From Trichosphaerium sp. ATCC 40318 (Eukaryota > Protista > Tubulinea), in assembly GCA_038496445.1 (NCBI GenBank), contig JALMLS010000186.1, positions 62,001 to 126,000 of the forward strand: a stretch of 64,000 nucleotides of DNA, written 5' to 3'. A program made the translations under genes and the position numbers. Within the stretch, counting starts at the first letter, position 1, and each line of letters begins with the position of its first letter. The notes beneath the pieces are model-generated. The model saw only the letters and a list, made by a program, of their open reading frames with translations, was not told the DNA's origin and made no database searches. This document shows, piece by piece, positions 481 to 43,195 of this stretch.

Positions 481-1170
481 TCAATAGCGAACGTAGTTTT
501 CAGTCCAATGTCCACGTTCTGGAGGAGTGAACGAGAAGCGAGCTGTCATCGATTTTCTGAAAATAATCTTTTTTCTTGTTACATCATGACATCTTTGAAG
601 ATACTTTACTGTACTGCTCATTTCTATATCTTCTTTTCTAAACCAAACAGGTATCCGCGTTTTTTGACCACGTCTTGCTGAGAATTCTATTTCAAAAGAC
701 GGAAACTGGCACTGATAAATTACAACGTCGTTTAAGAACACTGCACGCATTGAAGAAGCTTTTTCGACTTTTGCAAGCCGGTATGCCTTGAGAACCCTTT
801 TCATGCTTACAAAGCATCCGCATGGTATGACAGTAGTCTGTGAATGATAAAAATCCATCCGACAGTACTTTTGGTGTCGTTTGAAGATAGCATAAAAGTA
901 CTTCCGTGGTTTCTTGCTCTCTGCGGCTAATCTGGTAGTGTACAATCTCTTCCACGATATTTTATCACCATTAGCTCGTTTTCTGGTGAAAAGTTGTAAA
1001 TCGCGGCTACAATGCTTTCTCCATGTCCTCCACGCGTTAGATATTGTTTTATGCCATGAATAGCAAACATTAGTACAGTTAAGCATAGAGAATGCGTCAA
1101 GGTACTCAACGAACAGATGAGCCCATAAATGCTCATCCACACGTAGATATTGCGGGGTTTTTTGCGACAT
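481..1170 (-). CDS. Intronless F-box protein, C-terminal region unknown
   Basis: N-terminus LRVDEHLWAHLFVEYLDAFSMLNCTNVCYSWHKTISNAWRTWRKHC fits the F-box pattern; uninterrupted 229-aa ORF. Confidence 0.7.
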   Translation of the reverse strand: MSQKTPQYLRVDEHLWAHLFVEYLDAFSMLNCTNVCYSWHKTISNAWRTWRKHCSRDLQLFTRKRANGDKISWKRLYTTRLAAESKKPRKYFYAIFKRHQKYCRMDFYHSQTTVIPCGCFVSMKRVLKAYRLAKVEKASSMRAVFLNDVVIYQCQFPSFEIEFSARRGQKTRIPVWFRKEDIEMSSTVKYLQRCHDVTRKKIIFRKSMTARFSFTPPERGHWTENYVRY

Positions 1171-1422
1171 TGAGACAGTACGGAAAATTAGTAAACTAAT
1201 TGTGACTTTTCAACTGAAGTGGCACGTGTTCGGGCAGTTTTTGAACAGCAAGTTACAAACAAGGTTAAGCACTTTGCAACTAAATGAATAGAACTTTCTA
1301 AGTGTCGGACTTGGGTGTAGAATCTCTATTATCTACATGCCATGTACAGACAGCAAATTTTGTCCTGACCATGTGTGACTAAGGCGGTACAGAGTAAACT
1401 TAACCATCAGTTCCTGTTAACA

Positions 1423-2359
1423 ATGGCAGCTCCTTCTGATGCTGAACTTTCGAAAGATTTTACTTTAAACGATGGCACAAAGGGTCATTTAATAGTTAAG
1501 AGTGGCGATACAACTACAATCGAGCTGGTTTTTCCTGAGCATACGTGGTCTAGCACGAACGGACTCCAAACAATTCTTCAGGTCCTCTCACGACAAGCGC
1601 TGATTACAGAGCTAGAAAAAGATACATTTTCAATCACTAGAGCAAACCAGGTGACTCAAACTGTCAGTTGAGTCGTATCTTACATAATTATCCTAGAGCG
1701 AATACCATTTAACATGTGATCTTCTTCAAAGTCCTATTGTATTCCAACAATTGAAGGCGCACACTGCGCTAGAACAACACCTTCTTACACAGGTCACTGA
1801 TCTTCAAAAGCAAGTCACTGATCTTAAAGATAATGCGTTCATCAAAGGGATTGCTATACTTGAGGACAGACTTCCAGCTAATGGTCCAGGCACGTGATAT
1901 TTAGAGTTTTTCAATATAGTGCAAGTTAACGGAAAGACAGGAGGCGAGGCTAAAAACCAACAATGGTCAAGAAGACACTTCAATACAGTAGCAATCAACA
2001 CGATAGGATGTAGCTTAAACAATAATATTGTGACGTTACCAAAAGGAAGTTACTTGGTTCAAGCCTCAGCTCCTTGCTTTCGTTGTAATATCCATATTGT
2101 GAGACTATTCAATCTTGATACTAACAGTGTCATTTCTGTTGGTACAAAGGAACTTGCGTCCAATGGCAATGGATTGTGGGTACAAACAAGGTCTTTTTTA
2201 AAATGTCATCTTGTTCTTGAAACGCCCACTAGAGTTGTTCTACAACATTGGGTACAATCAATTGGATGCACAAAAGTTTGGTCTTTTGGTTACGGTTCAA
2301 GTGGTGGACCAAGCGGTACTCATGCTGTGTACACAGCAATGCAAATATGGAAGTTGTAA
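1423..2359 (+). CDS. 3-exon gene: short coiled coil plus C-terminal phage-tail-fibre/C1q-like beta domain
   Basis: ATG 1423; introns 1651-1697 (GT-AG) and 1890-1919 (GC-AG) join the frames; QVTDLQKQVTDLK heptads; C-terminal WSRRHFNT...TLPKGSYLVQASAP...RLFN...TRSF...LQH. Confidence 0.65.
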
Positions 2360-2960
2360 GTAATTAGACTATCAAATAAAGTTGCTTCTTCATTAAAAGA
2401 ACATGAATTGACCATCCTGCAATGTTAGTGTATTTTTATCTTGATACTAAGTCACATTCTTCGACAACGTAGGTCCTTGGTTTTATAAGTCACCTTTGTG
2501 CATATGGTAAAAGAGCACACGATTTTTTATCGTAGATTTTGTGTAAAGTAGCATTTGATTTACTAGTTTGCAATTTCAAATCTTGCTTGAATGGCATACA
2601 ATGATTGCGAAGGTATTAACTATTTGGATTGCAAGTATGTCTAGCCGCCAAGTATTAAGGCATCTTATTCTGTAACTTAGATAAAGTTGTTGGTTTCCCT
2701 TTTTTTTCTCTCTCGAAAAGTAAAACAACGGAACTCGACTTGACCTGTTTTGACAATGTTCGCACACGTGCCAACAATTTACAAAATATCTCTATACCAA
2801 AGTTCGCTTCGGTTAACCAAATAAGCCAAACAACTTGATTGATTATTTGAGTAGAATGCTCACTAGCGCCAATACTGGCACGTGCGAGGTATTAAAATTG
2901 GTTTAATCAAGTTCCTTACCAACCATTAACTAGAAATGTAATGCGCAATCAGTTGGTTGC

Positions 2961-3608
2961 CATCTATTAAACCTCCCGTTTGAGATTCAACTGGATATTA
3001 TCGATTTAGACTTGTTTGTGTATTTAACTTGGCCACTTATTTCAAAACACACAGCAATGACCACAAGGTTCGATACTGATATGAACAAGCATGGAAAATG
3101 GCGCCAAAGATTTGATAACAAGCTTGTACAGCAACAATACTGGAAACATGGTGTACAAGATGGAGAATGCCAGACATGGCATGAAAATGGAGAATTGGAG
3201 AGGCATTGTACTTACGACAATGGCCAATTGGAAGGAGAATCCAAGCGATGGTTTCACACTGGCAAATTGATGGAGCATTGTACTTACATCAACGGTAAAC
3301 TAGATGGAGAATACAAGACATGGCATCACGATGGCAAATTAATGGAACACTTTAATTACAGCAATGGCCAATTGGAAGGAGAATACAAGCAATGGTTTTA
3401 CAACGGCAACTTGATGGAGCAATGTAATTACATTGATGGTAAACTAGATGGAGAACACAAGACATGGCATCACAATGGCCAATTAGAGAGCTACAGCATT
3501 AACATTAAAGGAGAACAAGAAGGAGAATGCAAGGAATGGGATTTCGATGGGGAATTGAAGAACTACCAAACACAAGACAACCGAGGATTTATTAAATTTA
3601 ATTTATAA
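2961..3608 (+). CDS. F-box + MORN-variant repeat protein; the F-box has no in-frame ATG (possible pseudogene)
   Basis: Frame reads HLLNLPFEIQLDIIDLDLFVYLTWPLISK, then (GQLEGExKxWxxNGxL) repeats; paralog of 40801-41598. Confidence 0.8.
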   Translation, partial: HLLNLPFEIQLDIIDLDLFVYLTWPLISKHTAMTTRFDTDMNKHGKWRQRFDNKLVQQQYWKHGVQDGECQTWHENGELERHCTYDNGQLEGESKRWFHTGKLMEHCTYINGKLDGEYKTWHHDGKLMEHFNYSNGQLEGEYKQWFYNGNLMEQCNYIDGKLDGEHKTWHHNGQLESYSINIKGEQEGECKEWDFDGELKNYQTQDNRGFIKFNL

Positions 3609-9287: not shown

Positions 9288-9484
9288 GCATTGGGGCTAT
9301 CTAGGGCGTTTTGTGAATAAAGTGTCAATGCTTTTCTTTCAAAGCTTTGGCAATACAACTCGTTCAGGTTTGACGCCACTCATAGGTTGTAAATGCTCAT
9401 AGCGCACAAAATGATAACGTTTGACTCACGTGCGGTTGTACTTACTCTTAAAACTCGCAAAGACTCCCAACAAAGTGTGTGGCA

Positions 9485-10766: not shown

Positions 10767-13700
10767 ATGTACCACAACAGCTCGGCCTTTTTGGCCCTTA
10801 TCGTTTGTATAAGCTTGGTAGCTGGAAAGATAGTCTATTTATCAACATCTGGTACGCGTTACACTAATAATAAACAAAACAGGCGTTCAATAATCGTTGT
10901 AACATTGCATAGGCACTGATACAGGCGCTTGCGCGTCTGGCGCCCCTTGTGCTACTTTACAATACGCACTTTTTACCGCAGCGGCTACTGGAGATACAAT
11001 TCAATTAGCTGGCGGTACCTATAGAGGTACAATCGAAAGGAACGCGTTTCAGTACTAACCTATCGTAAGGCGAAGGAAATAACCAACTCTTATGGACAAA
11101 TACGTCTTCATTAAACAACATAACGTTTCAAGGTAACCAATAGATCCTAACCAAACTTTTAAAAAAATTAATACGTAATGTCGCGTGCATTGTCGAAAAC
11201 TCTATTTGTAAACAATGCCTAATTAGATATCTAGGTCCTACAAGTGACGAACCTGCTGTTTTAAATGGTGACGGCCTTCACCAGCTTTTCTATGTTCCAT
11301 CTTGCGGTAGCGCAATTAATACGTATGTGGAAGTAGCAGACAGAGTACATGTAGCTACCTTCAGCCACATTACGTTTGAGTATTTCTTGTGTAATTTTAC
11401 ACTACACGAACAAAGAACTGGAGAAAGATATCAAGGCGGTGACGGTGTAAGTGATAACGGATTTTGAGCATACACGCCTTTTTGGCGTGTTGGAATATTT
11501 TCAGACCTTACCAAACGCCTTTAACCTCAAAGACGCTTATTCTAGTTGTAGGAATACGGTGGATCTGTATGGTACTCTTACGGAGGATGTTCCGCCGAAT
11601 TTACGTTAGTACCATTGAGTTTTTTGCAAGTCTTTTTATGTATGGTAATTCTTCTATTTTAGGAATACAACGTTTACGGAAAACTCTTGCGACTACATAG
11701 ACCCACAAGATCCTAGTGCCACCTTTGCGCTAGCAGGATGGGGTATTAATTTATACCTAGACGGCGGTCACTTGACAGTACACAAGTAAGTGCAAAAACC
11801 TCGCTTTAACTCTATTATTTCCTACGCAAACCCGCTACAAGTTCTACGCCTATTTGATGGTTAGCAGTTTTCGGGGTATTGAATGTGTTTTCTTCCTTTT
11901 TAAAGCCGAGTACTTCTCGAAAGAAAAAGAAGAACTTCGTAACTCGTAAATACTTTTTGTTTGTTATAACTAATAATCTTCATAGCACACTTATGAAAAA
12001 TACGATAGTCAAAATCTTACCAGAAGATGAATTTGAGTTTGAAATTGAGAATAATGGCGCAGGAGTTATCTGGACAAGTAATGCTGATTTGACTGTGACA
12101 AACTCTACATTCCGTAACAACACCCTATCAAGAGGTGGTATGGTACAAGGCAATTTCAGACAGGAGACCATAGTTAAAAACTGCTTATTTGAAGATAATC
12201 CGACCACTGTTAATGGTGGTGTTAGTACGTCAAAACAAGTCGTTTCTTTTCTTTCATCAGTGCTTTGTCTTATATTTCCCAAGGGCTCACTGGTTCGGCT
12301 AGAAATCCTGGAGACAGGTTAGGTTCTCATGCTCTTATTGAGGATTGTGTTTTCCGGGGTAATGGTGATATAAGACGTGGAAGTCAGAGTGCAGCTATTG
12401 AAACATCTGAAATGGACAATGTTACAATTCGTAATTGCGAATTTGATGCCAATATCTTAGCTCAGGTTATAATAACTTCAATAACTGAAAACAGAGAAAC
12501 TTTTGTTGAGGACTGTAGCTTTACCAATGGCTTTAAAGGTAAACCTCTTTTTAAAAGTCAAAGCTTGCGCTAAAACAACAAACAAATCTATATTTACTAA
12601 CAATTACATCAAAGGTTTTTATGCTTTACAAGCTGCCGGTCCTGCACCTCTCTATATTACCAGATGTGTTTTTGAAAACAACACTGGTACTGCTGCTGCT
12701 CTTGGTACTGAAGGAGCTGCCAACCTTATTATAACGGACTCTATATTCAATCAAAACAAGTGCGCCAACAAAAAAACATTTTAATTGTTTTCTTTCTAAC
12801 TATTGTTCTACTAGAAATCCTCGAGATCCTTTCGATAGTTATCTATTGATTGTTGGTGGATCTACTGTTTCTTTTGATAACTGTACATTTACATCAGATG
12901 GAAACCAAGCAATATTAAGTAACGGTGATAGCACTGTTATTAAAAATAGTGTATTTAGCAATGGCAATTTACCAGATACAACTGGAAAGTTTACTAGATT
13001 TGAAGGTATTATACAATCTACCCATACCTTATTCCGTTTGTGATCAAAGCAATATGTTTAATCCTCAAACTACAAAGTGGTTTTTTTCGAGTTTTTTCTT
13101 CTGACTTTTCTTCTTAAGGCAACCAAGCAAATTATATATTTGTTAACGATGTATTTTCTGCTTATGCTACCAATTCTATAAACACTCTTGAACTAACAGG
13201 AGAGGGTACTTTTGAAATTGCAGAAGACGGTTTGGTATCTGTAATTAAAGCGTTAGAGATGGCCGCTGGTGTTATTACTGTACGTACTATCGTTGACTTT
13301 ATCGTGTTGTTTAATACTAACCTTTTAACTCAGGGAACAAGTTCAGATAAAACAAAGCACACAATCGTACTTGAAAAAGGTTCTGAGAGTAGAATCATTA
13401 CAGAAAATCCAAGTATTGATATTGACAATTGTACATTGATTGTTAAAGGAGAAGTACAACTACAAGGTTCTTTCTTGTTCCCAGAAGGCATTGTTAAACT
13501 CAGTAATTCTGAACTTGTCATCGATGATGGTGGAGAGGTTATTCTTTCTAAGCCTATTACCATTGAGGGTACAGGTAGCATCAATGTTAAAAACGGAACG
13601 TTAACAGCTTTGGTACGTATTGTTTCTTTGTTCTCTCGTTTTTTCTTTCTTCCTCCTCGTAACTGACATACTTTCTTAATAGATTTCTGCTGTTATTGAC

Positions 13701-15382
13701 GTTCCTGTTACAATTGGTGAGGCCGGTATTCTAAAGCTTAAGGTCCCTGGATCTTTTATTAACTTCACAAACACTGTGGACTCTTCAGGAACTCTTTTCT
13801 TGGATGTATCACAAGATTTCTTCAAAGTAGAGATTGGTGATACACTCTCACTATTTGCCTCACTCTCTGAACCACAATTTGCTACTGTTTCGGCTCCTTT
13901 TAACACACGTATCAATTTCACAAACGGAACAGTAGAAATTGAAGTACTCGGTAAGAACAAGCCTTCACAAAACCAGTTTTGTTTTCAGTCTCTTCTCCTT
14001 ATTACTTTGTAGAACCTGTGACCTCTTTGGAAGAAGATGACTGGTTGGATGCATCTAGATTCGCCGTGCTCCTACTCGCTATTGTGGGTGCTGTATTCAT
14101 TGTTGGACTTATGTTCCTCACTGTAGCTTATCGGTTCGTTGTTTTTTTAGTTTTTTCAAAAATACATGATTTCTAACAACTTCCCATAGCCGTGTTACCA
14201 TTATGCTCATTGCTGTACCACAACTTCTGTTTGTTACATTGTTCGGAGCTCTTGTTTCAGTAGCAGGTATAGTAGCTTGGGTAGCGCCTGCCGAATCCAG
14301 AGCTGTTTGTGAGCTAAGAGTTTGGTTACCTTTTGTTGGTTTTGCTCTTGTATTTGCGTACGTCAATATCATTCCATTTAGTTTGTTTGTTTATGTTTGC
14401 TGACCTAATATATGTAGTCCTCTATTCGCCAAAACGTACAGATTATGGCGTGTCTTCAGCGGAAACGGTCTAGAGAGTGTTAAAATTGCACTCTTTGATC
14501 TTGCAAAGATTATTCTAGTTGTATTCCTTGTTGAGGTTATTATCCTCTCTATTTGGAGCGGTACCTCTGGTCACCTGTCAGTAGTTAAACCAGATAATAA
14601 TGACTCATCCATTCTGCACTATGACTGTTCATCTGATAACACCACTGCCTTCTTGGTTATTCTTATTTTGTACAATGTACGCCTTTGTTTTCTTTATGTT
14701 TGTTTTTTCCTTTAAATGCTTGCCGCTCACTATACTTTCTAGGGTGCTATTCTCATTGCTGGTTGTATTCTTACTTTCCTTGTAAGAAAGGTACCAAGTA
14801 GAGCAAATGAAGCTCGTTACATTGCTATTGGTACGCTCATAGTTTGGGTTGTTTTTCTCTCATACTAATTTTTTCTCGTAGCAATTTACAATGTGTTTGT
14901 TTGGGGTCTCTTGATTGTTATTATTGGATTTGCATTACGCAACACATCTAACAGAGATGCTATTATACTAGTGATAGGCCTAGGTATTTGGTTCTTTGCA
15001 ATAGGTACGTTATGAAGAACTCTTTTGTATTTACCTTTGGATTTTATTCTTACTTTGCATTCTTTTAGTTACTGCTGCTGTTCTCGTGCTGCCAAAATTC
15101 TATGTTATTATCTTCCGTCCTAGTTCAGACGTTGCTAAGGTAAGTACTGCTACTTCAGTTACATGGGGTGGTTCTATGCAGATGAGCACCAGACACGGAG
15201 GTAGTTCGAAACTATCTTCTAAAAATAGTCAAGTATCAGGAGATATTACTGAGGCTGACTTGGGCGATAATATTGCAGAGCTTCAGGATGAAATTGCTGC
15301 ATTAGAGGATAAATTGAATACTCTACAAGGCACTGATAGCGAAGAGTATAGTGAGGATTCTGATGAAGAATCTTCTGATTAA
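10767..15382 (+). CDS. Class C (GABA-B/Grl-like, 7tm_3) GPCR with pectin-lyase-like parallel beta-helix ectodomain
   Basis: Signal peptide; VYLSTSGTDTGAC...PCATLQYAL; repeated xxNSxFxxN / NCxFxxN; 7TM motifs GFALVFAPLFAKTYRLWRVF, RKVPSRANEARYIAI, LPKFYVIIFRP; about 15 or more introns. Confidence 0.85.
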
Positions 15383-15895
15383 GAATAAGTTAAACAAAAG
15401 AAAAAGTAGAAAAAACGAGAAAATGATTTTTTTTTCTTCAACAGCTAGCTGCTAAGAAAAAACAATCACGTTTTTTTGTGCTTTTCTTCTTTGTAAACTG
15501 TTGTTTTAATAATGTATTACAAAAAATAAAGTTTGAAACATAACACTAACACGTGTAAGTCCATGAAATAAAATCGTAAGCACCTATTGCTCATCATTGT
15601 AGTATGTTATTATACAAGTATAGCATAGGACAGTGCAGCTCATATGTGCTTGGTTGGCACCAATGCTTGTCAGCTTTCGGTTGGGCGTTCGGTGTAATGC
15701 AGATAAATAAGTAACTTTTATCTCAAATTCTTTAGATTAAGTAATGTCCATAGAAATCACGAAAAGAGTGTACCACAAAAAACAATGAACATTCTTCTGA
15801 GAAAATTCTATTCATTTTTTGGTCGTTAAGTCAAGTTATCAAACAACGCAAACAACACAACGCTTCCCAATAATATTCAAAACGGACTAAAATAT

Positions 15896-16735
15896 ATGGC
15901 ACTAAAACGCAGTAAAACAGCGGACGGAATTAACTCACTTTCGTTACCTCCAGAGACATTAACTCAAATTCTCCGCCATTTGGACAAAGAAGAACTTATT
16001 TCATCTTCAATCGTCTCTCGTATGTTCAATGATGTCATTCGCATCAATATTGGGTTCGAATACCTTTGGTTGAAAGAATCATCAGAGTGTGAGGTTCTAA
16101 GAGGCAGTCCATTACTTAAAAACACAATCAATTTTGAGGGCTATGAGTTGTCAGAGAATTACTTGAGTTGTCTGCATGGTGTTCACACGATAAATTTGAG
16201 TGATACAAGTATTACAGATACAGGCATCCTCACTTTAGCTCAAGGAGGAAACCACAGCATTCATGACATCAATTTACGATCCACACAGATAACAGATGTT
16301 TCGTTAAAAGCACTCAAGAATGTTCACACCATCAACATTTGGGGGTGCAATAATGTAACTGTTGAAGGTGTTAAATCACTCTGTAACGTACACAAAATTA
16401 CAATAGAAGGATCAAACCGCTATAAAATAGCCCATATGGTCTGTACTGATATCAGTGATGGCTTGATAAATGATCCACCAGATGAATGGCTCAAACATCT
16501 TGGCAATGTACATACAGTTCGTATCGGTAATGGCCAGTTCATTACAGATGATGGAATCAAAGCATTGGTAAATGTAAAACGCCTAGAGTTAGATGAATGC
16601 AAATTGGTAACAGACTCAGGGATGAAGCATTTGACAAATCTTAAGCACCTAAAACTTTCACATTGTGATAATATTTCATGTGATTGCATGAGCCACTCAA
16701 AATCTCTCAAAACACTCAAAATTCAGGACTCATGA
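15896..16735 (+). CDS. Intronless F-box/LRR protein
   Basis: LSLPPETLTQILRHLD...SIVSRMFNDVI F-box; GVHTINLSDTSITDTGI-type LRRs. Confidence 0.9.
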   Translation: MALKRSKTADGINSLSLPPETLTQILRHLDKEELISSSIVSRMFNDVIRINIGFEYLWLKESSECEVLRGSPLLKNTINFEGYELSENYLSCLHGVHTINLSDTSITDTGILTLAQGGNHSIHDINLRSTQITDVSLKALKNVHTINIWGCNNVTVEGVKSLCNVHKITIEGSNRYKIAHMVCTDISDGLINDPPDEWLKHLGNVHTVRIGNGQFITDDGIKALVNVKRLELDECKLVTDSGMKHLTNLKHLKLSHCDNISCDCMSHSKSLKTLKIQDS

Positions 16736-17059
16736 CCCTATTATTGATAAACTATCATTCCAACAAACTGTGTGCTAATGTCAGTAGAGGCAAGCAACCT
16801 GTTAACAAGTAATAAACAACGACAAAAGGGAATTACTGAACTAAATTAGTTCTGACTAGAATTCTGAATTACAAATTGCTATGTGCTGTTTTAAGCTATG
16901 CTTTGAACTTTTACAATTTTACAAGAATTTCCATTAACAGTGAGTTAATTATAAGGTGGAAGGAATTAGAAACACAGCTATTTTGCCCTACTGCCAATGT
17001 TACATGGTTGGCCCACCATGTTTTCTTTGCTTGCATTTAAACATAAGTGTTGCTACGCC

Positions 17060-17185
17060 TAGGCTTATTCAAACAAGCTTTATTCAAATAGTTTGTATAA
17101 CAGCTACCAGTACAATCAATATCGATATTGATAACCATGAAGGCCGACTAGTAACATTATATCCATATCATTTTATCTCCAAGCC
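17060..17185 (-). pseudogene. Remnant of the 3' end of an F-box/MORN gene (paralog of 21399-22526)
   Basis: Reverse complement ggatataatgttactagtcggccttcatggttatcaatatcgatattgattg aligns with ggatatgatgtttctagtagaccttcatggttttcaatatcaacattgattg near 22428-22480. Confidence 0.7.
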
Positions 17186-17432
17186 AAAAAAGGAATTTTA
17201 ACAGATTTGCTGATAAAGCTATAAACCACCTAGCCATCTTAGCTGCTAGTATAAACAAGGTACCTTGTTTACGTTTCTTATGAAGCAGTTCAATAGTAGC
17301 ATGTAGAAGAATAGTCTCTGAGAGAGTTGACTTGACTAACATTAAGCCTACATATAAAGCGCAATACATAGCTTGCCAATGTACCAAAAGAAGTATATAT
17401 ATAAAAAAGCTTTTTCTGAGGTATTAACAATA

Positions 17433-18661: not shown

Positions 18662-19522
18662 TTAGCAAATAAACGACGGGTCCTGAGGGTCCTGAATTTT
18701 GAGTGTTTTGAGAGATTTTGAGTGGCTCAAACAATCACGTGAAATATTATCACAATGTGAAAGTTTAAGGTGCTTAAGATTTGTCAAATGCTTCATCCCT
18801 GAGTCTGTTACCAATTTGCATTCACCTAACTCTAGGCGTTTTACATTTACCAATGCTTTGATTCCATCATCTGTAATGAACTGGCCATTACCAATACGAA
18901 CTGTATGTACATTGCCAAGATGTTTGAGCCATTCATCTGGTGGATCATTCAAGTCATCCCTGACATCAGTACAGATCATATGGGCTATTTTATAGCGGTC
19001 TGATCCGTCTATTGTAATTTTGTGTACGTTACAGAGTGATTTAACACCTTCAACAGTTACATTATCACACCCCCAAATGTTGATGGTGTGAACATTCTTG
19101 AGTGCTTTTAACGAAACATCTGTTATCTGTGTGGATTGTAAATTGATGTCATGAATACTGTGGTTTCCTCCTTGAGCTAATATGAGGATGCCTGTATCTG
19201 TAATACTTGTATCACTCAAATTTATCGTGTGAACACCATGCAGACAACTCAAGTCATTCGTTGATAACTCATAGCCCTTAAAATTGATGATTGTGTTTTT
19301 CAGTAATGGACTGCCTCTTAGAACCTCACACTCTGATGATTCTTTCAACCAAAGGTATTCGAGCCCAATATTGATGCGAATGACATCATTGAACATACGA
19401 GAGACGATTGAAGATGAAATAAGTTCTTCTTTGTCCAAATGGCGGAGAATTTGAGTTAATGTCTCTGGAGGTAACGAAAGTGAGTTAATTCCATCTGCTG
19501 TTTTACTGCGTTTTAGTGCCAT
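18662..19522 (-). CDS. Intronless F-box/LRR protein (inverted twin of 15896-16735)
   Basis: Protein nearly identical to the 15896 ORF. Confidence 0.9.
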   Translation of the reverse strand: MALKRSKTADGINSLSLPPETLTQILRHLDKEELISSSIVSRMFNDVIRINIGLEYLWLKESSECEVLRGSPLLKNTIINFKGYELSTNDLSCLHGVHTINLSDTSITDTGILILAQGGNHSIHDINLQSTQITDVSLKALKNVHTINIWGCDNVTVEGVKSLCNVHKITIDGSDRYKIAHMICTDVRDDLNDPPDEWLKHLGNVHTVRIGNGQFITDDGIKALVNVKRLELGECKLVTDSGMKHLTNLKHLKLSHCDNISRDCLSHSKSLKTLKIQDPQDPSFIC

Positions 19523-19757
19523 ATATTTTAGGTTGTTTTGAATATTATTGGGAAGCGTTGTGTGTTGTTTGCGTTGTTTTGATAACTTGACTTAACGACC
19601 AGAAAATGTATAGAATTTTCTCAGAATTATGTTCACTGTTTTTGTGGTACACTCTTCTTTCGTGATTTTTTTTGGCGACAGGTTTAACAATACTACATTT
19701 GATACTTGTAAAAATATTACAAGTTCGTATTTTTGAGTTGTGTTTGTCAACAAGCAA

Positions 19758-20646
19758 CTAGTTCCATTTATTACTTACTAATTCTTGATTGATCCAAGTT
19801 ATGCCTAATGCTTCAACATCGTTCTTGGTGATCTTGTTGGTAAAAACGTTGGCATACAATCTAAGGGTTTTAAGAGATTTCAAATATTTTAAGCAATCCT
19901 TTGTAATCCCTGTACAACCTAAAATCTCAAGGTGTTCAAGATTTACCAAGCCCTTCATCTGTTATTCTATGCCGTAACATATGCAAGCTGAGATCTTTAA
20001 CATTTATCAATGATCTGATACCATTTGTTGTATCATTATCATTCCTTGAAACAAGATTCCTTCTACCGATGCAAACTGTATGTACATTACAAAGTTGTTT
20101 TATCCAAGAGTCTCTTATACTACTGATTAAAATGCAATGGACACGATCTTTGATAGCATTTATACCTTTATCAGTATGTACACCTCTCAGAGCCATCAAT
20201 GATACATCTGTTATTTCAGTATAATCTAAATTGATGGTGTGGATGTTGTGGTTTCCTTCTCCATCTGTTAAAGCGATGATATGCGAGTCTGTTATGTTTG
20301 AATGTGGTAGGTGGATTGAATAGACACCATCAAGACAAGCCAAGTCATCACGTGATAACTTAACTCTGCTACAACGTAATTTTGTGTTTTTGAGCAATAA
20401 ACTTGCTTTGAGAACTCTACAATCAGAAGGCTCTTTTAACTGGATGTCAATAAACCCAATATTGTTACGTATGATGTCGGTAAATAGATGCGAAACCGAG
20501 GAAGCTCTAATACGCTGTGTTCTGTCCAAGTATAGTAGAATATGAGTAATAGTCTCTGGTGGTAGGTTTGTAACTTTAGTTTGGTTTATTGATGTCATGC
20601 GGTACTCGGCTAACGTGGCACGTTGGTAAGACTCCATTTGACTCAA
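19758..20646 (-). pseudogene. Frameshifted F-box/LRR gene
   Basis: F-box TNLPPETITHILLYLD and LRRs; frame switches at about 19955 (ITDEG / MKGLVNLEHL). Confidence 0.8.
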
Positions 20647-24327: not shown

Positions 24328-25450
24328 ATGAAACAACACGTCTGTATACTACTTTTACTTCTGTTATGTGCTACTTCAAGTATCTACGCTTATTGGCAAA
24401 CATGCCTCTGGAAACCAGATCGTGGCAAAGAAATACCAAAATAGGTATTTTGTCGCAAGCGGACCTTATACAACTGTAACATGGAATGTTGCACCTGGAG
24501 ATAAATTCATTCCGCTGGAGTACCTATTCACTACCACCCACGGTGCTTTTACTTTGTTTATAAAGCCTGGTAAAAAGTGGATGTTAGCGTACATTGATGA
24601 TACTACAAAGGAGTGGCGAGTTGCGGATGGCGGGAGAACTAGACTCGGGTCTTGGCCAACAAAGTGGAACGACAAGTATGTCTCTGGATACTTCGACAAC
24701 TCAGCACAAAAATCTTTGTTCGTAGCCAACCCAGACGGTAGATACGCAACTCTCAGGATTGAGTATTACTCTCAATTTGGTTTTGATGGCTTCACATGGA
24801 GACAAATCCAACACGCAACAAACGGAGACATTTCTTCCTCAGATCAAATTATTTCAGGTTTTTTCGAAGTAATTAACCCTCATCCTCAATCATATGTCGT
24901 TCATATTAAATCCGCTGGGTATCAAGTGATGAACTACAACAGAAATACAAACAGCTGGGATATTCTATCAAGTACAACGTCAGGACGAATATACTGGTGG
25001 GTGATCAATCCAAATGACCATTATGTTGTAGGAAGCTTCTATGATGCTCCTACAGAGGATCTCTTAGCTATAAACTCGAACGGATGGCATCATACAATGA
25101 AATTTGATAATGCTACAAAACAGTTTGTTTATACGGAAGGAGGACATGGAGGTCTTATTGGTGTGTGGGTAATTCATGATAGTGATACTTTTCTCGGTGG
25201 AGACTTTGACGTGTCTTCATTTTCTAACACTGATGCCGTTGTGGCGATTAATCAAAATGGTTATTCGCAAATGATGAAGTTTGTGAACAATCAGTGGACT
25301 TATGTAACTGGTAATACTGGCAATGGATTGATTGGTAATTGGCATATTGGTTCAGATGACCACTATACGCAAGTCTTAGCGGTTGGATATGGGCGCAGCA
25401 GATTAATTTGCATTGGCAGTAGTCAGGCATGGGCAAGTGTTAACGAATAA
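24328..25450 (+). CDS. Intronless secreted beta-propeller (FG-GAP/VCBS-like repeats) with a frameshift after the signal peptide
   Basis: Signal MKQHVCILLLLLLCATSSIYA in one frame; repeats GxIGxWxI...D...G(D/S)F(D/Y)...AINxNG...MKF in another; removing one A at 24398-24400 fuses them. Confidence 0.7.
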
Positions 25451-27056: not shown

Positions 27057-27856
27057 TCATACAGTATGTATGTTATTTTGTATTTTTTTCTTAGTAACCA
27101 ACTCTTTTGAAATATTCATACACTGGCACACTTCAATACAATCTGCATTTAATCTATGTATACCCTCATCTGTGACTTTCACACAACCATAAAGCTTTAT
27201 TTCTTTGACCTTTGATAATGTCTTGATAGAGTCATCTGTTACATTTCGTGCTGATAACTTTAAATACTTGACATTCTTCAACGCTTTTATACAATCATCA
27301 TTGATATGATCTCCAGACAAATAAACTGTCTCAGTATACTTTAAGCCCTTGATACCACTTGCTCCCACTTTAGGACATTCTTTTAGATCAATGTACTTTA
27401 CATGTTTCCAGAAAAATGAACCATCTGCCTTTCTTATTTTTTTCCCTTTTCCCAACGCTTTGACACCCTCATCTGTTATATTTTGACAGTTTGCCAAGAT
27501 AATAGTATGAACACCATGTAACATCTTTAAACTTCTGTCTGTAACAGCTGTATACGATAAATCAATTGTATGAACACCAGCTAATGCCTTGACGCCCTCA
27601 TCTGTTATTTTATGGCAACGTGATAAGTTAATAGTACGTACACCTTTCAATAAGTACAAATACTTATCACTGATATCTCTTGAAATCAACCAAGTATCAA
27701 TAGAGGTATTTTGAAGTAAAGAGCTTCCAGAAAGAAGAGATATTTCCCTTTTGCTTTTAACCATTATTACGCCATATCCAACATGGTTGTGAACAATATC
27801 TCGCAATAAACGGCATGTTTGTGCTGAGCGGAGAGTAAAAGAGCCTTGTTTCAGGA
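27057..27856 (-). pseudogene. Chimeric F-box/LRR gene lacking its start and half of the F-box
   Basis: 5' part nearly identical to the 29433 gene, 3' part nearly identical to the 31203 gene; homology breaks at 27856. Confidence 0.85.
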
Positions 27857-28098
27857 CGGACCCACGTTTTTTCCGAATTTTTCGAAAGAATTCGATACAA
27901 AAACCGAATGCCTATACCCACCAATGGATCACTATATGTGAGCGAAGGTCGGGTTCTAGTTCCGAGCACAGCGAGGACCCGACCGTAAGTGAACCAGGCG
28001 CTTTCTAGTTTAGTGGACTGCCCTAGCTATGCATCTTTCTACGAATTCTATTTTTTCGAATTTTTGTTTTCGGAAAATTCGGAAAAAACTATGGCCCC
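27857..28098. mobile_element. 242-bp MITE-like insertion with imperfect TIRs and an internal hairpin
   Basis: Left end ggacccacgttttttccgaatttttcgaaa vs reverse complement of right end ggggccatagttttttccgaattttccgaaa; replaces 117 bp present in the paralog (29434-29550). Confidence 0.7.
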
Positions 28099-29433
28099 TT
28101 TTAAACCTAACACGTGGTCACTTTTTTTAATTTTGTGGTGTTGTAGCGTGAAGAATGTAAATGTCATCAAAGAGCTTTGCTACACGATAGTAGATCAATG
28201 ATGTAACGCTCCAGACTACTGAGTCTCAGACTTAACCTATCTAAAACAACTTAATAAAGAACTTTTTATACTAATCTCGGTTACGTTATCTCTTAAACCT
28301 TACAAATGAACAGTTCTACAGCATAACAAGTGGTATGTCCAAAATACTCATTGTAGATATAAAGTATCGTCCGCCCTTATTTATTAATGGCAGCATACCT
28401 TTTTGCCTTACACAACAACTTTTGAATTCTGACAATCTTTGATCTAACATTCAAGTACCTGTTTAAACATTGGCCTTAGTTTCAGGAGTAGTTTCAGTTT
28501 GTTGGAACCCAACAAACGATGCAATGACAAGAGTGAGTTCTCTCATTGATTACGGACAAGGGAGTGGTGCTAACAGGAATCGTGTCACCTTCAGGGATGG
28601 CAGACTTGTTATAACATTAATTATCGCCAATAGAAGTATTATTGGCTTCTTACTTTAAATGTTTGGTACAACGGAGAGTGATATAGAGACCTATAACTTA
28701 TGTATATATAATAGATACACCCAACGTACATACCACTCCATAGTTAAGATGCGTTGCCAAGTGATTTTGTGACATGAACCTTTTGTGCTTTAAAAACATG
28801 TGTTATGGTGTAGTCGCAGGATATTTTGTTATTTTGATACATCATCGAAATTAGTACAGTTGTTGTTCAATGTAAATCCAGTCGTCACATGCGATAAAAC
28901 GCAAATCTAGATGAAAATCCACAATTGCCTTGTACGTGAAAGGATAGGTGGAGAATTCTTGTTCCCTACAATCTGTACAACAATCCAAAAATATCTTCAA
29001 CGTGAATGTGGTACCGTGGCATCATGAGAAAAGATTGAGTGTTGAACACAAGTACCACGTTTTCAACATGTCTAATGCATGGAGATTTACATCCTTCAAA
29101 GAGTCAGGTCTACTGGCAGACTGATATCATTACAATATTGGGTCAGAACAATAAAGAGCGAGGTATGTAAATTACAAAGAAGACGAGTAGCAAGGTCTAT
29201 GGTACAAGAACGGGCTGCTTTACCTACAAGGGTGCTATGCTAGTGGGAAAGAAGATGGACAGTAAAAGCAATAGCCAAAACAAGTGTAGAATGCTTACTG
29301 ATTTATTTGCACATGGTTGACTTGTATAATTCGTTGATCTACTATCGCGTAGCAAAGCTCTTTGATGACATTTACATTCTTCACGCTACAACACCACAAA
29401 ATTAAAAAAAGTGACCACGTGTTAGGTTTAAAA
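28099..29433. repeat. Inverted upstream arms (28099-28198 vs 29334-29433) of a head-to-head F-box/LRR pair
   Basis: About 100-bp reverse-complement match, with homology continuing into the coding regions. Confidence 0.88.
28940..29290 (+). pseudogene. Degenerate MORN-repeat remnant
   Basis: Broken frames containing WYKNG (tggtacaagaacggg, also present near 41122), GKEDGQ and HGD. Confidence 0.5.
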
Positions 29434-30266
29434 TGGTCAACAATGGTAGTTTTAAAACGAAATCAACACCTTCTTGTTTACATCACTGCTTTATGGAAGA
29501 TAATAACACAATGGACCTTATTTACCTGCCTTTTGAAATAATCGTTCATATCCTGAAACAAGGCTCTTTTACTCTCCGCTCAGCACAAACATGCTGTTTA
29601 TTGCGAGATATTGTTCACAACCATGTTGGATATGGCGTAATAATGGTTAAAAGCGAAAGGGAGATATCTCTTCTTTCTGGAAGCCTTTTACTTCAAAATA
29701 CCTCTATTGATACTGTTTTGACTTCAAAAAATATCAGTGATAAGCACTTGTACTTATTGAAGGGTGTACATACTATTAACTTATCAGAATGTAATTTAAT
29801 TTCAGATGAGGGCATCAAGGCTTTAGCTGGTGTTCATACCATTAGATTGGCGTGGTGTAGTGATATTACAGATGATGGTGTTAAGGCATTGGCTGGCGTC
29901 CATACAATTGATTTATCATATACAGCTGTTACAGATAATGGAGTCAAGGCTTTAGCTGGTGTTCACACTATTGACTTATCAGATACAGCTGTTACAGATA
30001 ATGGTGTCAGGGCATTGGCTGGTGTTCATGAGATTGATTTAGAAGGTACTGCAATTACAGATAATGGTGTCAGGGCATTGGCTGGTGTTCATGAGATTGA
30101 TTTAGAAGGTACTGCAATTACAGATGAATGTTTGAAGTACTTAGTTGGTGTTCATACTATTACCTTATATAATACAAATGCAACTAAAGAGGGTACCAAG
30201 GTATTGATTGGTGTACATAAAGTTAAATGGGAGAGTAATTATTTTAACAAGGTTCTGCCTGATTAA
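29433..30266 (+). CDS. Intronless F-box/LRR protein
   Basis: LIYLPFEIIVHILKQG...AQTCCLLRDIV; (AGVHTIDLSxTAVTDNGVKAL)n; likely start is ATG 29493 or 29511. Confidence 0.9.
   Translation: MVNNGSFKTKSTPSCLHHCFMEDNNTMDLIYLPFEIIVHILKQGSFTLRSAQTCCLLRDIVHNHVGYGVIMVKSEREISLLSGSLLLQNTSIDTVLTSKNISDKHLYLLKGVHTINLSECNLISDEGIKALAGVHTIRLAWCSDITDDGVKALAGVHTIDLSYTAVTDNGVKALAGVHTIDLSDTAVTDNGVRALAGVHEIDLEGTAITDNGVRALAGVHEIDLEGTAITDECLKYLVGVHTITLYNTNATKEGTKVLIGVHKVKWESNYFNKVLPD
29992..30126 (+). repeat. Perfect 63-bp tandem duplication (one LRR unit)
   Basis: ttacagataatggtgtcagggcattggctggtgttcatgagattgatttagaaggtactgcaa occurs twice. Confidence 0.95.
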
Positions 30267-31202: not shown

Positions 31203-32280
31203 TTACGATGTAGAAGAGCATTCTGAAGTCCCTGCACTTGATTCCTCAAAAGATTCTGAGTCTTCATACGATGATTCTTCACAATAAAAACAGTATGTGT
31301 ATGTTATTTTTTTCTTAGTAACCAACTCTTTTGAAATATTCATACACTTGCACACTTCAATACAATCTGCGTTTAATCTACGTATACCCTTATCTGTGAC
31401 TTTCCCGCAACCATAAAGCTCTATTTCTTTGACCTTTGATAATGTCTTGATAGAGTCATCTGTTACATTTCGTGCTGATAACTTTAAATACTTGACATTC
31501 TTCAACGCTTTTATACAATCATCACTGATATGATCTCCAGACAAATAAACTGTCTCAGCATACTTTAAGCCCTTGATACCACTTGCTCCCACTTTAGGAC
31601 ATTCTTTTAGATCAATGTACTTTACACGTTTCCAGAAAAATGAACCATCTGCCTTTCTTATTTTTTTTCCTTTTCCCAACGCTTTGACACCTTCATCTGA
31701 TACTCCACTTCCACCCAATACCGCCTTTTCAGCTCCTGCTAGAGCCTTGATACCGATATCCGTTACAAGTGGCGATGAAATATTAATTGATTTGAGACCT
31801 CTCAATGCCTTGACGCCCTTGTTTGTAATCTTTTTTGAAGTGATGTAAATATGTTCAACTCCTTTAAGTGCCTTCAATCCCTTATCAGTAATGTTGTCCA
31901 TCCCATATAGAGTCACATCACGCGCACCAGATAGCAAACATACGCCTTTGTCAGTTATGTGTGGCATATTGTAAAGGTGTACGGACTTAACACCTGACAG
32001 AAACTTTAAGTCTTCGTCCAAAATGTCATCACATCGTATGAGTGTAATGTTTGAGTTCTCGAGCACTCCCTTGTAATTGAGAATCCTTTCAAGTATGCCG
32101 CGTTTCCTTAAAGTAACTGATACATAACCGACAATATCATGAATGATTGTTGAAAACAAGATACAAGTCTCAACAAGAGAAAAACGTGATTTTGACAGAA
32201 ACGAGAAAATAATCGCCAATATCTCTACCGGAATATCTTGAATATTCAGGTCCTTGTTACCTTCGTTTACCCTTATACAA
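31203..32280 (-). CDS. F-box/LRR protein with acidic tail; no in-frame ATG before the F-box
   Basis: Frame extends upstream as IRVNEGNKDLNIQDIPVEILAIIFSFL until a TAA; LRRs follow; ends EESSYEDSESFEESS... Confidence 0.8.
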
Positions 32281-40198: not shown

Positions 40199-40800
40199 AA
40201 AAAGGAATAAAAAAAAAGTTTTTCTATTAGCACCGCCCTTGTTTTGTTTATGATACAAAAGATTGCAGTTGTGACTAGGTATAATTGAAGGGACACTTTA
40301 ACATATTTGCTCTACTATTGAAGACCAACACATCACCAAATCGTGTAGAACATGTGTCGCAAAGAAAAACGATACAACTGTACAATTTTCAAAAGCGTGC
40401 GAAATGCTACATATCGAACGAGCACCAATAGTGTTACAAAACAGTTTTGGCGGAGTAACAGGCGGTTTCCAATATCTTGGTATTTTGACCAGACCACCCA
40501 GGGGACATCCATAAGTACAGCTATTCAGTACACGTGAATGCTTACTAGCTGCACGAGTAGAAACATGTGGATCAAAAATCTAAAAACCTATGAGTTCCGT
40601 ATTGTTGTTTTTAACTTAATTATCACGTTTAGTAACGTAAATAGTAACTGCGACCAGGTATAAACATAGCCGGTCGTTATTACTAAACCTCAATCCCACA
40701 ACAATTTTGTTTTAGCGGCCCCTTTTGTATTGTGTTTACACGACCTTACTCATTTTCCATGTTAAGCTAAGCACTTAATAAACCAGTTAACTATTACTAG

Positions 40801-41598
40801 ATGTCATACAAATCCCAACATTTTCACATACTACACCTTCCACTGGAGCTACACTTTTACATCATTGATATTGATATTGAAGCATACATAAAGTGGCCTT
40901 TGTTGTCGAAACAAACAGCAACAACTACAAGGTTTGATGTAGAGATGAACAAACATGGAAAATGGACAAAGTATACAGTTGCTGATACAGCCAAGCGAGT
41001 ATTTCAAGAGAATTGGATGAATGGTAAACTTCATGGAGCATGTAGAAAGTGGTATGATAGTAGTCAACTTGATAGCCAGTTCTACTATGCAAATGGTAAA
41101 CTTGAAGGAGATTTCAAGGGATGGTACAAGAACGGGCAACTAGGTGAGCACTGTAAATATGTTAATGGTAAGAGAGAAGGACAGTATAATGTTTGGCTTC
41201 CTAGCGGAGAATTGAGAGAGAAGCATCACTATGTAAAAGGAAAACTTGATGGTGAGTCAAAACATTGGTACAAGAATGGACAAATTAGGAAACAGCTTTT
41301 TTTTATCAATGGCATACAAGAAGGAGAGTACAAATGTTGGCACAAAAATGGTCATTTGATGTTTAAATTTAACCTTGTCAATGGCGTTTATGAAGGACAA
41401 CAGCTTTTGTGGCATTCACGAAATCAGCTTTCTGAAGAATATTATTGTGTTGCTGGTAAAAAACATGGAGTGTACAAGATCTGGTATAAAAATGGACAAC
41501 TAAAATTAGAAGGTAAGTACAACAATAACAAACTAGAAGAAGCAAAAAGATGGTATGAAGACGGAAAACCATTATTGTACAAGTTTGTTGGGGTATAG
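40801..41598 (+). CDS. Intronless F-box + MORN-variant repeat protein
   Basis: ILHLPLELHFYIIDID...KWPLLSK; (GKLEGxxKxWYKNGQL)n. Confidence 0.88.
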   Translation: MSYKSQHFHILHLPLELHFYIIDIDIEAYIKWPLLSKQTATTTRFDVEMNKHGKWTKYTVADTAKRVFQENWMNGKLHGACRKWYDSSQLDSQFYYANGKLEGDFKGWYKNGQLGEHCKYVNGKREGQYNVWLPSGELREKHHYVKGKLDGESKHWYKNGQIRKQLFFINGIQEGEYKCWHKNGHLMFKFNLVNGVYEGQQLLWHSRNQLSEEYYCVAGKKHGVYKIWYKNGQLKLEGKYNNNKLEEAKRWYEDGKPLLYKFVGV

Positions 41599-41787
41599 CG
41601 AGGGTCTGCCCATTTTATTTATACACAGTAATTAGTATTGATGTATTTATGAACCAAAATGCAGATAAAATTAGTACAGTGTTGAGCGTTCTTCCAAACA
41701 GTTGAATACGTGAATATTGTTTTTCTAAAGTTGTATTGACAACTACAGATATACAAGTAATGGAACAAGTATAACCCAACTTGTCTA

Positions 41788-42609
41788 TTAGTATTTGACG
41801 GTACATCCTTTCTCTTTCAATGCCATAATACCAGCTGTTGATAGTGAGTTACAACCAAACAATAGTGCTCTATGTACACCCTCCAGTGCCTTCAAACCCT
41901 GCTCTGTTATATTTGTGTACGACAAGTTGACTTCATGTGCTCCTGCTAACGCTTTCAAACCTTCATCTGTTACTTCTGTATTTGACAATTTAATTGCATG
42001 TACACCTGCTAACACCTTTATACCTTCATCTGTAATCGATTTGCACGTATTTAAGCTGATAGTATGTACACCAGCCAACGCCTTCAAACCTTCATCTGTC
42101 ACGTTTGTACATGCTAAATCAATCTCATGTACACCTGCCAACGACTTTATACCTTCATCTGTTATTGATCCGCAGTTAGACAACCCGATTTTATGTATAC
42201 CAGCCAAGGCCTTCAAGCCTTCATCTGTCACCTCTGTGCACCCTAAATCGATCTCATGTACACCTGCCAACGCCTTTATACCGTCATCTGTAATCAATTC
42301 ACACATGGCTACGTTGATAGTATGTACACCTGCTAACATCTTCATATGGTTATCATCTAGTGTACTATGACACTGAACACGAATTGGTGTATTTAGGAGT
42401 AACGGGCTGCCGGAAAGCATCTTCACTTTACTTACGCTGCGAATATCAATAGCAGTATATCCTACGTGGCTGTGAACGATATCTCGCAATAAGCGGCATG
42501 TTTGGGCTGAACGGAGCGTATAACTCCCTTGTTTGAGAATACGCGCTATTATTTCGACTGGGAGTGCTAAGAGCTCACTTGCGGCCTTTTCAGTGTATCC
42601 TTGGCTCAT
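41788..42609 (-). CDS. Intronless F-box/LRR protein
   Basis: LLALPVEIIARILKQG...AQTCRLLRDIV; alternating 22/21-aa AGVHxIxL...TDEGxKAL repeats. Confidence 0.9.
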   Translation of the reverse strand: MSQGYTEKAASELLALPVEIIARILKQGSYTLRSAQTCRLLRDIVHSHVGYTAIDIRSVSKVKMLSGSPLLLNTPIRVQCHSTLDDNHMKMLAGVHTINVAMCELITDDGIKALAGVHEIDLGCTEVTDEGLKALAGIHKIGLSNCGSITDEGIKSLAGVHEIDLACTNVTDEGLKALAGVHTISLNTCKSITDEGIKVLAGVHAIKLSNTEVTDEGLKALAGAHEVNLSYTNITEQGLKALEGVHRALLFGCNSLSTAGIMALKEKGCTVKY

Positions 42610-42786
42610 TTTGTTAGAATTAACGTGTAAGACGCGGCCTAGTTGTGAGATACGTGTTATTGAAAGTTAACATAAGTACTACTTTCAAAGAATACAATGT
42701 GTTTCGTAATGTAGACTTTCGACGAGAATGAGTCTACGGTAAATACACTACAACTACTCATAAAGAGCTATCTAGCATGTAGTATC

Positions 42787-42966
42787 TCAACAAAAACTGA
42801 GATCAATAGTGTGAACTCCAGAAAGAGCTTTTATCCCTTCATCTGTAACCATAGTGTGAGAAATATCAATGGTATGAACACCAGCAAGTGATTTTACACC
42901 TTCATCTGTAATGTGCTTACACCGTTCAAGATTGATGGAATGAACACCAGCAAGGGTTTTTAAACA
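42787..42966 (-). pseudogene. Orphan LRR cassette (about 2.5 units)
   Basis: LAGVHSINLERCKHITDEGVKSLAGVHTIDISHTMVTDEGIKALSGVHTIDLSFC*; no F-box or start codon. Confidence 0.8.
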
Positions 42967-43077
42967 TGCTTATACATAGACGCTGTGCCATTCATCTTGG
43001 TGAGAATATAGAACGTTTTAAAGTTAGATACAAAACGTCTTGGATAAAGGAGTCACCGTGTATCAACGTGACCTCTT

Positions 43078-43195
43078 GTTGAAGTATGTGAGTGTATGAA
43101 TATTTCAAAGGAGTTGGGTACTAAGAAAAAAATAACATACACATGTTTTTATTGTGAAGAATCATCACGTGAAGAATCATTTGAGGAATCAAGCA
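43078..43195 (+). pseudogene. Orphan copy of the 3' end of the 31203 F-box/LRR gene
   Basis: gaagtatgtgagtgtatgaatatttcaaaggagttgg...gaagaatcatc...gaggaatcaag matches the reverse complement of about 31238-31357. Confidence 0.8.

Follow-up and report, generated by a model that had tools for sequence, protein, structure and literature searches.

A local cluster of F-box-LRR and MORN genes in an amoebozoan genome, with probable birth-and-death turnover and exchange with giant viruses

The genome of the amoeba Trichosphaerium (37.69% GC, 8.7 introns per gene, mean intron length 75 nucleotides (nt); PMC10521059) has been catalogued for genes resembling those of giant viruses, and approximately 1,570 of its gene models have their best hits in giant viruses, F-box and MORN being the commonest domains among them (Tekle et al. 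2023, PMC10521059). The best hits tabulated in that work include an Indivirus F-box domain protein, hypothetical proteins of Harvfovirus and Hyperionvirus, viral MORN proteins and bacterial YwqK antitoxins (PMC10521059). Here, we present the analysis of a 64-kb stretch of DNA from Trichosphaerium sp. ATCC 40318 (contig JALMLS010000186.1, positions 62,001 to 126,000; "the window" hereafter, numbered from its first letter), in which a superfamily of F-box-leucine-rich repeat (LRR) and MORN genes occupies positions 481-43206. The giant-virus-like models of the catalogue and the genes of the window share the same two domain classes, a GC content of 37-38%, short introns and many introns per ordinary gene (PMC10521059), and the pattern of best hits is also the same, with F-box proteins of the Klosneuvirinae type, viral MORN proteins and bacterial MORN proteins of the YwqK type (PMC10521059). 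The F-box and MORN load as a class is already published for Trichosphaerium (PMC10521059). However, that catalogue is a genome-wide one based on BLAST and the Alien Index, and it covers neither the dynamics of individual clusters nor subfamilies, selection or the N-terminal module of the MORN genes (PMC10521059). New here are a local account of how the copies duplicate, recombine and decay, their division into subfamilies, their host-like and partly constrained state, and a lineage-restricted N-terminal module in the MORN genes.

The window is probably part of an amoebozoan nuclear genome in which a lineage-specific superfamily has formed a local cluster. This superfamily probably turns over by birth and death, has been resident for a long time and has been exchanged with giant viruses, and it comes in two architectures. 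One architecture combines an F-box with LRR units of 21/22 amino acids (aa) in at least three subfamilies, and the other a three-helix module with the motif LPxEL and MORN_2 repeats. The cluster would have grown by segmental inverted duplication (dS about 0.06) and by the gain of repeat units within genes, recombination between paralogues would have given rise to the chimeric gene 27057, and copies would have been lost via frameshift, 5′ truncation and fragmentation. The copies look long-resident in their host-like composition and in their placement among host genes.

Composition of the cluster and its domain architectures

The superfamily consists of 11 long open reading frames (ORFs), seven of the LRR class, three of the MORN class and one other, plus four relics (Table 1). 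This census, first given in a preliminary description made from the sequence, was recovered when the family ORFs were compared with the window by tblastn, by extended reading frames and by a six-frame scan with hidden Markov models (HMMs). Seven genes are intact and begin with ATG (481, 15896, 18662, 21399, 29433, 40801 and 41788), and four are compromised (19936, 27057, 3012, which corresponds to 2934-3608, and 31203). The neighbours of the family members are ordinary multi-exon genes with many short exons, and the window as a whole has a GC content of 37.2% and lacks strong compositional domains. The family had been called intronless, which is appropriate insofar as it is mostly single-exon, but which is uncertain for 3012 and 31203 because each may hold a short 5′ exon and an intron. 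In both cases (ORFs 2934-3608 and 31203-32264), the N-terminal module is retained and an in-frame ATG is absent from the contiguous ORF; a stop codon is located just 5′ of the ORF, a candidate AG acceptor lies at or near its 5′ end, and farther upstream there may be a short exon that contains an ATG and a GT donor. For 2934-3608, a candidate first exon of 33 nt (2856-2888) followed by a 45-nt GT..AG intron (2889-2933) would provide a start. The two genes may carry a 5′ intron rather than being dead.

The F-box identity of the LRR class is indicated by several profiles. The Pfam F-box model (PF00646) passes only for 15896, 18662 and 19936, with 29-30 bits against a cut-off of 20.5; it is weak and below cut-off for 481, 29433 and 41788 and absent from all three MORN genes. 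An N-terminal profile of the LRR genes, which also includes viral and Balamuthia F-box sequences (profile A4), matches solved F-box proteins, namely FBXO31 (2.4e-7) and also FBXL5, TIR1, FBXL17 and Legionella AnkB, and a full-length LRR-gene profile matches FBXL2 (2e-14) and FBXL17 (3e-10), the latter match spanning the F-box. The layout is that of FBXL proteins, with an LRR solenoid C-terminal to the F-box (LRR_6 E values down to 4e-23), and suggests that the LRR proteins are substrate-recognition subunits of SCF (Skp1-Cullin-F-box) ubiquitin ligases. Their repeat unit of 21/22 aa is very regular and follows the consensus GVHxIxLxxTxITDxGxKALA. Entropy amounts to 1.7-3.4 bits at unit positions 4, 6, 8, 9, 11 and 12, which are the canonical exposed positions of the LxxLxLxxN motif, and to 0-0.7 bits at most framework positions. 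We also observed that the histidine at unit position 3 (GVH...) is near-invariant in 29433, 41788, 27057, the MMETSP transcripts P0001/P0003 and a viral homologue (L002:3983-4624). This position on the concave face of LRR proteins is normally exposed and variable, and a histidine there would make a histidine ladder. Gene 29433 has seven units, four of which form a young tandem array of 63-nt units.

The three MORN genes contain tandem units of approximately 23 aa that match MORN_2 (PF07661) above cut-off with E values of 1e-15 to 2e-25; in 40801, AlphaFold models them as an array of beta-hairpins. Their N-terminal module begins with LPxEL, has three helices and contains a conserved KWPLL..TA.T.RF stretch; it has no match in Pfam and none in the PDB with profiles of 5 or 44 sequences. 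An hhalign comparison with an F-box profile is weak (E 3.7e-4, probability 36%) and in register on LPxEL, and it is plausible that the module is a divergent F-box. The label of F-box genes, which the preliminary description had applied to the whole family, thus stands for the LRR class by Pfam and PDB profiles, whereas for the MORN class this weak alignment is the sole match. In a search of 1.84 billion representative proteins, the module was found in 55 clusters (50% identity) in all; ten of these were checked, and all ten were transcripts of one MMETSP assembly, none of them viral. The AlphaFold model of 40801 based on an alignment of 48 sequences (pLDDT 86.7) shows three short N-terminal helices (residues 15-24, 26-35 and 37-43) at pLDDT 93-97, followed by a single-layer MORN beta-sheet; with an alignment of 6 sequences, the N-terminus was unmodelled (pLDDT <50). 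Foldseek searches with the whole model, whose matches cover the MORN part only, returned MORN1 structures at E 2e-8 and many giant-virus MORN proteins. Gene 21399 ends in a hydrophobic stretch (22407-22526) that is typical of tail anchors and is likely one, so that the MORN family probably has at least one member bound to a membrane. The remaining gene, 481, matches the Pfam F-box-like model at E 0.0065 with 16.7 bits, below the cut-off of 24.3, and its eight PDB matches are all F-box/WD proteins that align weakly (E 0.013-0.65) at residues 15-96.

The best database relatives of three subfamilies are transcripts with 44-46% identity that belong to one MMETSP assembly, as indicated by the constant ratio of transcript number to gene number across the matches. 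Two LRR genes are collinear with their MMETSP relatives over 94-99% of the query, the best local alignment of the MORN gene covers approximately two-thirds of the query, and the relatives of all three subfamilies include the subfamily-specific N-termini. One MORN relative is labelled Trichosphaerium sp. ATCC 40318, MMETSP0405. As to whether the family is transcribed, the answer is divided: the MMETSP amoeba transcribes relatives of each of the three subfamilies, but the window's own copies were not found there. Scans of metagenomes and transcriptomes with gene 15896 and with a codon-degenerate probe designed on the GH3 exon gave no match.

Table 1 Members and relics of the F-box-LRR/MORN superfamily and selected neighbouring genes in the window
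Feature	Positions	Strand	Remarks
Gene 481, other F-box-like	481-1170	-	intact ORF, 229 aa; divergent F-box-like N-terminus
MORN gene 3012	2934/3012-3608	+	LPxEL module present, in-frame ATG absent; MORN_2 E 1.7e-25; tandem 72/144-nt units
F-box-LRR gene 15896, arm 1 of inverted duplication 1	gene 15896-16735; arm 15754-16738	+	intact, 279 aa; ~140 nt upstream included; Pfam F-box E 4e-7, above cut-off
MORN tail relic, spacer of inverted pair 1	17103-17181	-	80% DNA identity to 22407-22492; tblastn 77% over 22 aa; HMM E 4e-4
F-box-LRR gene 18662, arm 2 of inverted duplication 1	gene 18662-19522; arm 18662-19668	-	intact, 286 aa
F-box-LRR gene 19936, same subfamily as 18662	19857/19936-20646	-	damaged; Pfam F-box E 1e-6
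MORN gene 21399	21399-22526	+	intact, 375 aa; LPxEL module; hydrophobic C-terminal tail; MORN_2 E 7e-15
Chimeric LRR gene 27057	27057-27857	-	F-box start lost; 5′ part resembles 29433, 3′ part resembles 31203
Copy of 29433 upstream region	28096-28201	-	97%; outer edge of inverted duplication 2
Decayed MORN relic just 5′ of 29433	29131-29292	+	3 in-frame stops; HMM E 0.0087, tblastn E 0.08; marginal
F-box-LRR gene 29433	29433-30266	+	intact, 277 aa; LRR_6 E 4e-19, F-box-like E 0.054
F-box-LRR gene 31203, third subfamily	31203-32264	-	acidic/Ser tail; contiguous ORF without in-frame ATG
MORN gene 40801	40801-41598	+	intact, 265 aa; MORN_2 E 1e-17
F-box-LRR gene 41788	41788-42609	-	intact, 273 aa; tail-to-tail with 40801; LRR_6 E 4e-23, F-box-like E 0.0016
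Orphan LRR cassette (relic)	42775-42945	-	three LRR units between stops, F-box absent
Stub of 31203-like C-terminal tail (relic)	43054-43206	+	stop codons inside; 83% DNA identity to 31224-31360
Right-handed beta-helix protein gene	11879-14012	+	multi-exon; Pfam Beta_helix E 3e-5 to 4e-4 on three exons
Trypsin-like protease gene	~32.8-34 kb		multi-exon neighbour
SH3 protein gene	39.9-40.2 kb		multi-exon neighbour
GH3 glycosidase gene	52.4-55.2 kb		at least 5 exons

Rearrangement, decay and selection

Two inverted duplications lie within the cluster. In the first, 15754-16738 and 18678-19668 are 95% identical over 995 nt, the arms being approximately 1.9 kb apart, and the duplication takes in about 140 nt 5′ of each start codon. 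In the second, 27560-27856 corresponds to 29551-29848 (91%) and 28096-28201 to 29331-29436 (97%), and in the 27057 copy other sequence has taken the place of the F-box-coding segment between 27857 and 28096. Over its 3′ 430 nt, 27057 shares 95% identity with 31203 and is therefore a recombinant of two subfamilies; it is likely a pseudogene. Gene 19936 carries a frameshift near 19948-19958 and three internal deletions compared with 18662, as seen from two tblastn segments in different frames. The MORN tail in the spacer of the first inverted pair is the sole surviving piece of a lost duplicate of 21399. Intragenic repeat arrays were detected by Tandem Repeats Finder (TRF) in 29433 (63-nt units, 86%), 41788 (129-nt units) and 3012 (144-nt units, 88%), and the units resemble each other more within one gene than across genes, which fits unequal exchange or slippage following gene duplication. 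Inverted duplication, chimerism, unit expansion, orphan cassettes and decay, which had all been listed from a first reading of the sequence, are confirmed by the two inverted pairs, by 27057, by the arrays, by the cassette at 42775-42945 and by 19936 together with the relics. Duplication, non-allelic recombination, unit expansion and decay likewise support the view, expressed at the same time, of a birth-and-death process with recombination.

Each MORN element has LRR neighbours, and the statement that the two classes repeatedly sit together is correct as a description. However, the association does not exceed chance in shuffles of element order, in which nine adjacencies including relics were observed and 6.0 expected (P = 0.057), with P = 0.30 for genes only. 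A functional LRR-MORN pair was rejected as unproven, the adjacency lying within chance in these shuffles.

We further assessed selection by pairwise comparison of non-synonymous and synonymous divergence (Nei-Gojobori, NG86) in three young pairs. For the intact pair 15896/18662, dS was 0.064 and dN 0.028 (dN/dS, or omega, 0.44), with the first 53 codons, which encode the F-box, unchanged; this pair is under purifying to relaxed selection. For the chimera, the 3′ part of 27057 compared with its parent 31203 gave dS 0.080, dN 0.074 and omega 0.93, and the 5′ part compared with its other parent 29433 gave dS 0.131, dN 0.107 and omega 0.82, values near 1 as expected of a pseudogene. None of the three pairs had an omega above 1, that is, no positive selection was detected among them by NG86, and the epithet "diversifying", which had been attached to the repertoire, is not borne out.

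Viral relatives, origin and alternative explanations

Single-protein scans of viral contigs gave no match, and queries with alignments were needed. The closest non-amoebal relative of the LRR class thus obtained is an F-box-LRR ORF of 213 aa (L002:3983-4624) that is 52-53% identical to 41788. It is located on a 102-kb contig near genes for an NAD-dependent DNA ligase, a capping enzyme and an ankyrin protein, and because of these neighbours, the contig clearly belongs to a giant virus. The contig of another top LRR match carries single-gene RNA polymerase subunits and therefore also is a giant virus, and a third match, whose compact contig has genes for kinase and DnaJ proteins, may be viral; a further apparently viral LRR match (L003) was discarded as irrelevant, being from a high-GC phage. 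The MORN queries matched 13 viral loci at 24-39% identity, with bacterial relatives being similar, and one of these loci is a canonical F-box+MORN gene in a virus of 1.47 Mb (L006:3959-5185). Matches in bacterial genomes were restricted to the LRR repeats, with at most 45% identity and mostly in Planctomycetes. The link to giant viruses made in the preliminary description is therefore upheld by the F-box-LRR relative with 52% identity, by the further matches on viral contigs and by the F-box+MORN gene of the 1.47-Mb virus, and exchange of these families between amoebae and viruses at some time is well supported.

The claim that the genes are captured viral effectors fared differently. A tree of the N-terminal non-repeat parts yielded three amoebal subfamilies (supports 90/93, 94/93 and 85/95). 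MMETSP partners are present in two of them, and 31203 groups with MMETSP P0001/P0003 (94/93). The viral rows form a polytomy with long branches, and an inference of the donor from this tree was dropped for that reason. The family genes have a GC content of 34-42% and a GC content at third codon positions (GC3) of 27-40%, as in host exons, compared with 29-30% GC and 21-22% GC3 in the viral homologues, which lie 8-15 points below the window genes. No viral hallmark genes were found in the 64-kb window by Pfam scans of ORFs of at least 150 aa and a sample of smaller ORFs, the recognised genes being of cellular type only, and the Mimivirus early-promoter motif AAAATTGA occurred 7 times against 10 expected and never upstream of a family gene. 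An integrated viral block was rejected on the host-like composition and the cellular gene content. Capture from viruses is therefore no more than one possible direction of transfer, given the polytomy of the viral rows, the host-like GC and GC3, the lack of viral hallmarks and promoters in these scans, and the non-viral nature of all ten MORN-module clusters that were checked.

Against this background, we weighed the cluster as passive debris, i.e., as decaying leftovers of giant-virus insertions that were spread by local rearrangement and have no function in the host. Such debris would account for the four compromised genes out of 11 and the four relics, for the omega values close to 1 of the chimera pairs and for window copies not being found as transcripts, and Table S3 of PMC10521059 flags many such Trichosphaerium models as not expressed. 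Nevertheless, there are seven intact ORFs of 229-375 codons, the young intact pair has kept its F-box fully conserved at an omega of 0.44, the family genes match host exons in GC and GC3 and exceed the viral homologues by 8-15 points, neither hallmark genes nor an enrichment of AAAATTGA were found in the 64 kb, and the subfamilies are common to expressed transcripts at approximately 45% identity, which implies long retention. We therefore consider debris an unlikely explanation of the cluster as a whole. Still less likely, in our opinion, is the diversifying cell-autonomous immune repertoire, in which domesticated viral F-box effectors would serve as adaptors of SCF ligases and mark proteins of viruses or bacteria for degradation. 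The rapid turnover and shuffling of the copies and the variability of LRR units at canonical exposed positions speak in its favor, as does the link of the expanded F-box families of Caenorhabditis and plants to pathogen responses (PMC4063957, PMC8665587, PMC3030570), but variability at exposed positions is generic to LRR proteins and no proof of selection, the dN/dS values stay below 1 in every pair, and none of the window's own copies turned up among the MMETSP transcripts.

A stronger competitor, which we regard as possible but doubtful, reverses the direction, with the families being native amoebal SCF adaptors that giant viruses took from their hosts. The restriction of the MORN module to 55 clusters, with all ten of those checked from a single MMETSP assembly and none viral, fits this scenario, as do the host-like composition and the different, canonical F-box of the viral F-box+MORN genes, and a review argues that amoebal viruses gain repeat-protein genes from amoebae and bacteria (PMC5753266). 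On the other hand, single exons in a genome with approximately 8.7 introns per gene (PMC10521059) fit an intron-free donor, no cellular sequence outside this amoeba lineage is as close to the LRR unit as the viral copy (52%), and the tree leaves the viral rows in a polytomy. A more far-reaching idea, to which we attach little probability, is that the LPxEL module is a lineage-restricted, highly divergent F-box and that the MORN genes form, together with the LRR genes, a set of domesticated SCF adaptors, exchanged with giant viruses and directed at viral or bacterial proteins. If true, this would be the amoebal counterpart of the F-box immunity proposed for nematodes, built from parts that the viruses of the amoeba deploy against it.

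A long-resident, lineage-specific superfamily under birth-and-death turnover and with a history of exchange with giant viruses remains the explanation that we favor, even though several observations weigh against it. The best transcript identity for genes of the window is just ~45%, and an exact look-up of five window proteins in a public gene collection found none on record. The omega of the intact pair rests on 11 synonymous and 18 non-synonymous differences and those of the chimera pairs on fewer synonymous ones, and gene conversion between the inverted arms could distort dN/dS. Moreover, part of the cluster may be plain debris because four of the 11 genes are compromised and the omega of the chimera is near 1.

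The window provides a base-pair view of how the published, supposedly virus-derived load of F-box and MORN genes is maintained. Most of this load could stem from a few old subfamilies that duplicate, recombine and decay within the genome rather than from ~1,500 separate transfers, and such an in-genome origin would temper counts of lateral transfer that are based on best BLAST hits to repeat proteins. In addition, a small, lineage-restricted N-terminal module of MORN proteins with a possible link to SCF ligases is now delimited.

Further features of the window and comparison with known systems

Several other features of the window were recorded. The beta-helix protein encoded at 11879-14012 is of a kind common among secreted or surface proteins. 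In the middle of the cluster, a single-exon ORF of 360 aa (24368-25450, plus strand) has no Pfam match and contains Gly/Trp/Asp-rich internal repeats, which suggests a beta-propeller-like repeat protein. Two paralogous neighbouring ORFs at 47869-48294 and 49098-49544, both on the minus strand, encode basic, Pro/Lys-rich proteins of 141 and 148 aa with common motifs such as YGALPKP and SLSENEI...GGKRTR, their DNA being 71-80% identical over approximately 200 nt. An intact single-exon ORF of 350 aa (56327-57379, minus strand) has no significant Pfam match and no record in the public gene collection. A direct segmental duplication of approximately 1.5 kb (58700-60241 and 62387-64000; 78% identity, locally 82-96%; spacing approximately 3.7 kb) resembles two multi-exon genes in tandem, without relation to the F-box family, and the window ends within the second copy. 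An inverted repeat of 88 nt with 81% identity (62252-62338 versus 56055-56139) connects the start of that second copy with sequence downstream of the 350-aa ORF.

The organization of the LRR genes resembles that of FBXL proteins such as Skp2, FBXL2 and FBXL17, which are substrate receptors of SCF ligases and also have an N-terminal F-box followed by an LRR solenoid. They differ in their very regular units of 21/22 aa (GVHTIDL...TD.G.KALA) with an invariant histidine and in the shortness of the proteins (230-340 aa), and there is no orthology between the LRR proteins of the window and the FBXL proteins of animals. Among bacterial proteins, Ralstonia GALA, a Legionella LRR protein and the F-box of AnkB are weak profile matches to the LRR genes, and the MORN_2 repeats of the YwqK proteins are similar to those of the window, but the amoebal N-termini are shared by none of the matches in bacterial genomes. 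The large F-box families of Caenorhabditis and plants have, like the cluster described here, expanded in particular lineages, they form tandem clusters in which pseudogenes are frequent, and a role against pathogens has been proposed for them but is largely unproven (PMC8665587, PMC3030570, PMC4063957); in contrast, they carry FTH/FBA2 domains in nematodes and Kelch, FBA or LRR domains in plants, and a viral counterpart is absent. The same F-box-LRR and F-box-MORN architectures are abundant in giant viruses of amoebae (Klosneuvirinae, Orpheovirus, pithoviruses and marseilleviruses). There, the LRR unit of the closest viral homologue is nearly identical to that of the window, whereas the F-box N-termini of the viruses fall outside the amoebal subfamily types, and the N-terminal module of the amoebal MORN genes was not found in viruses among the 10 of 55 clusters checked.

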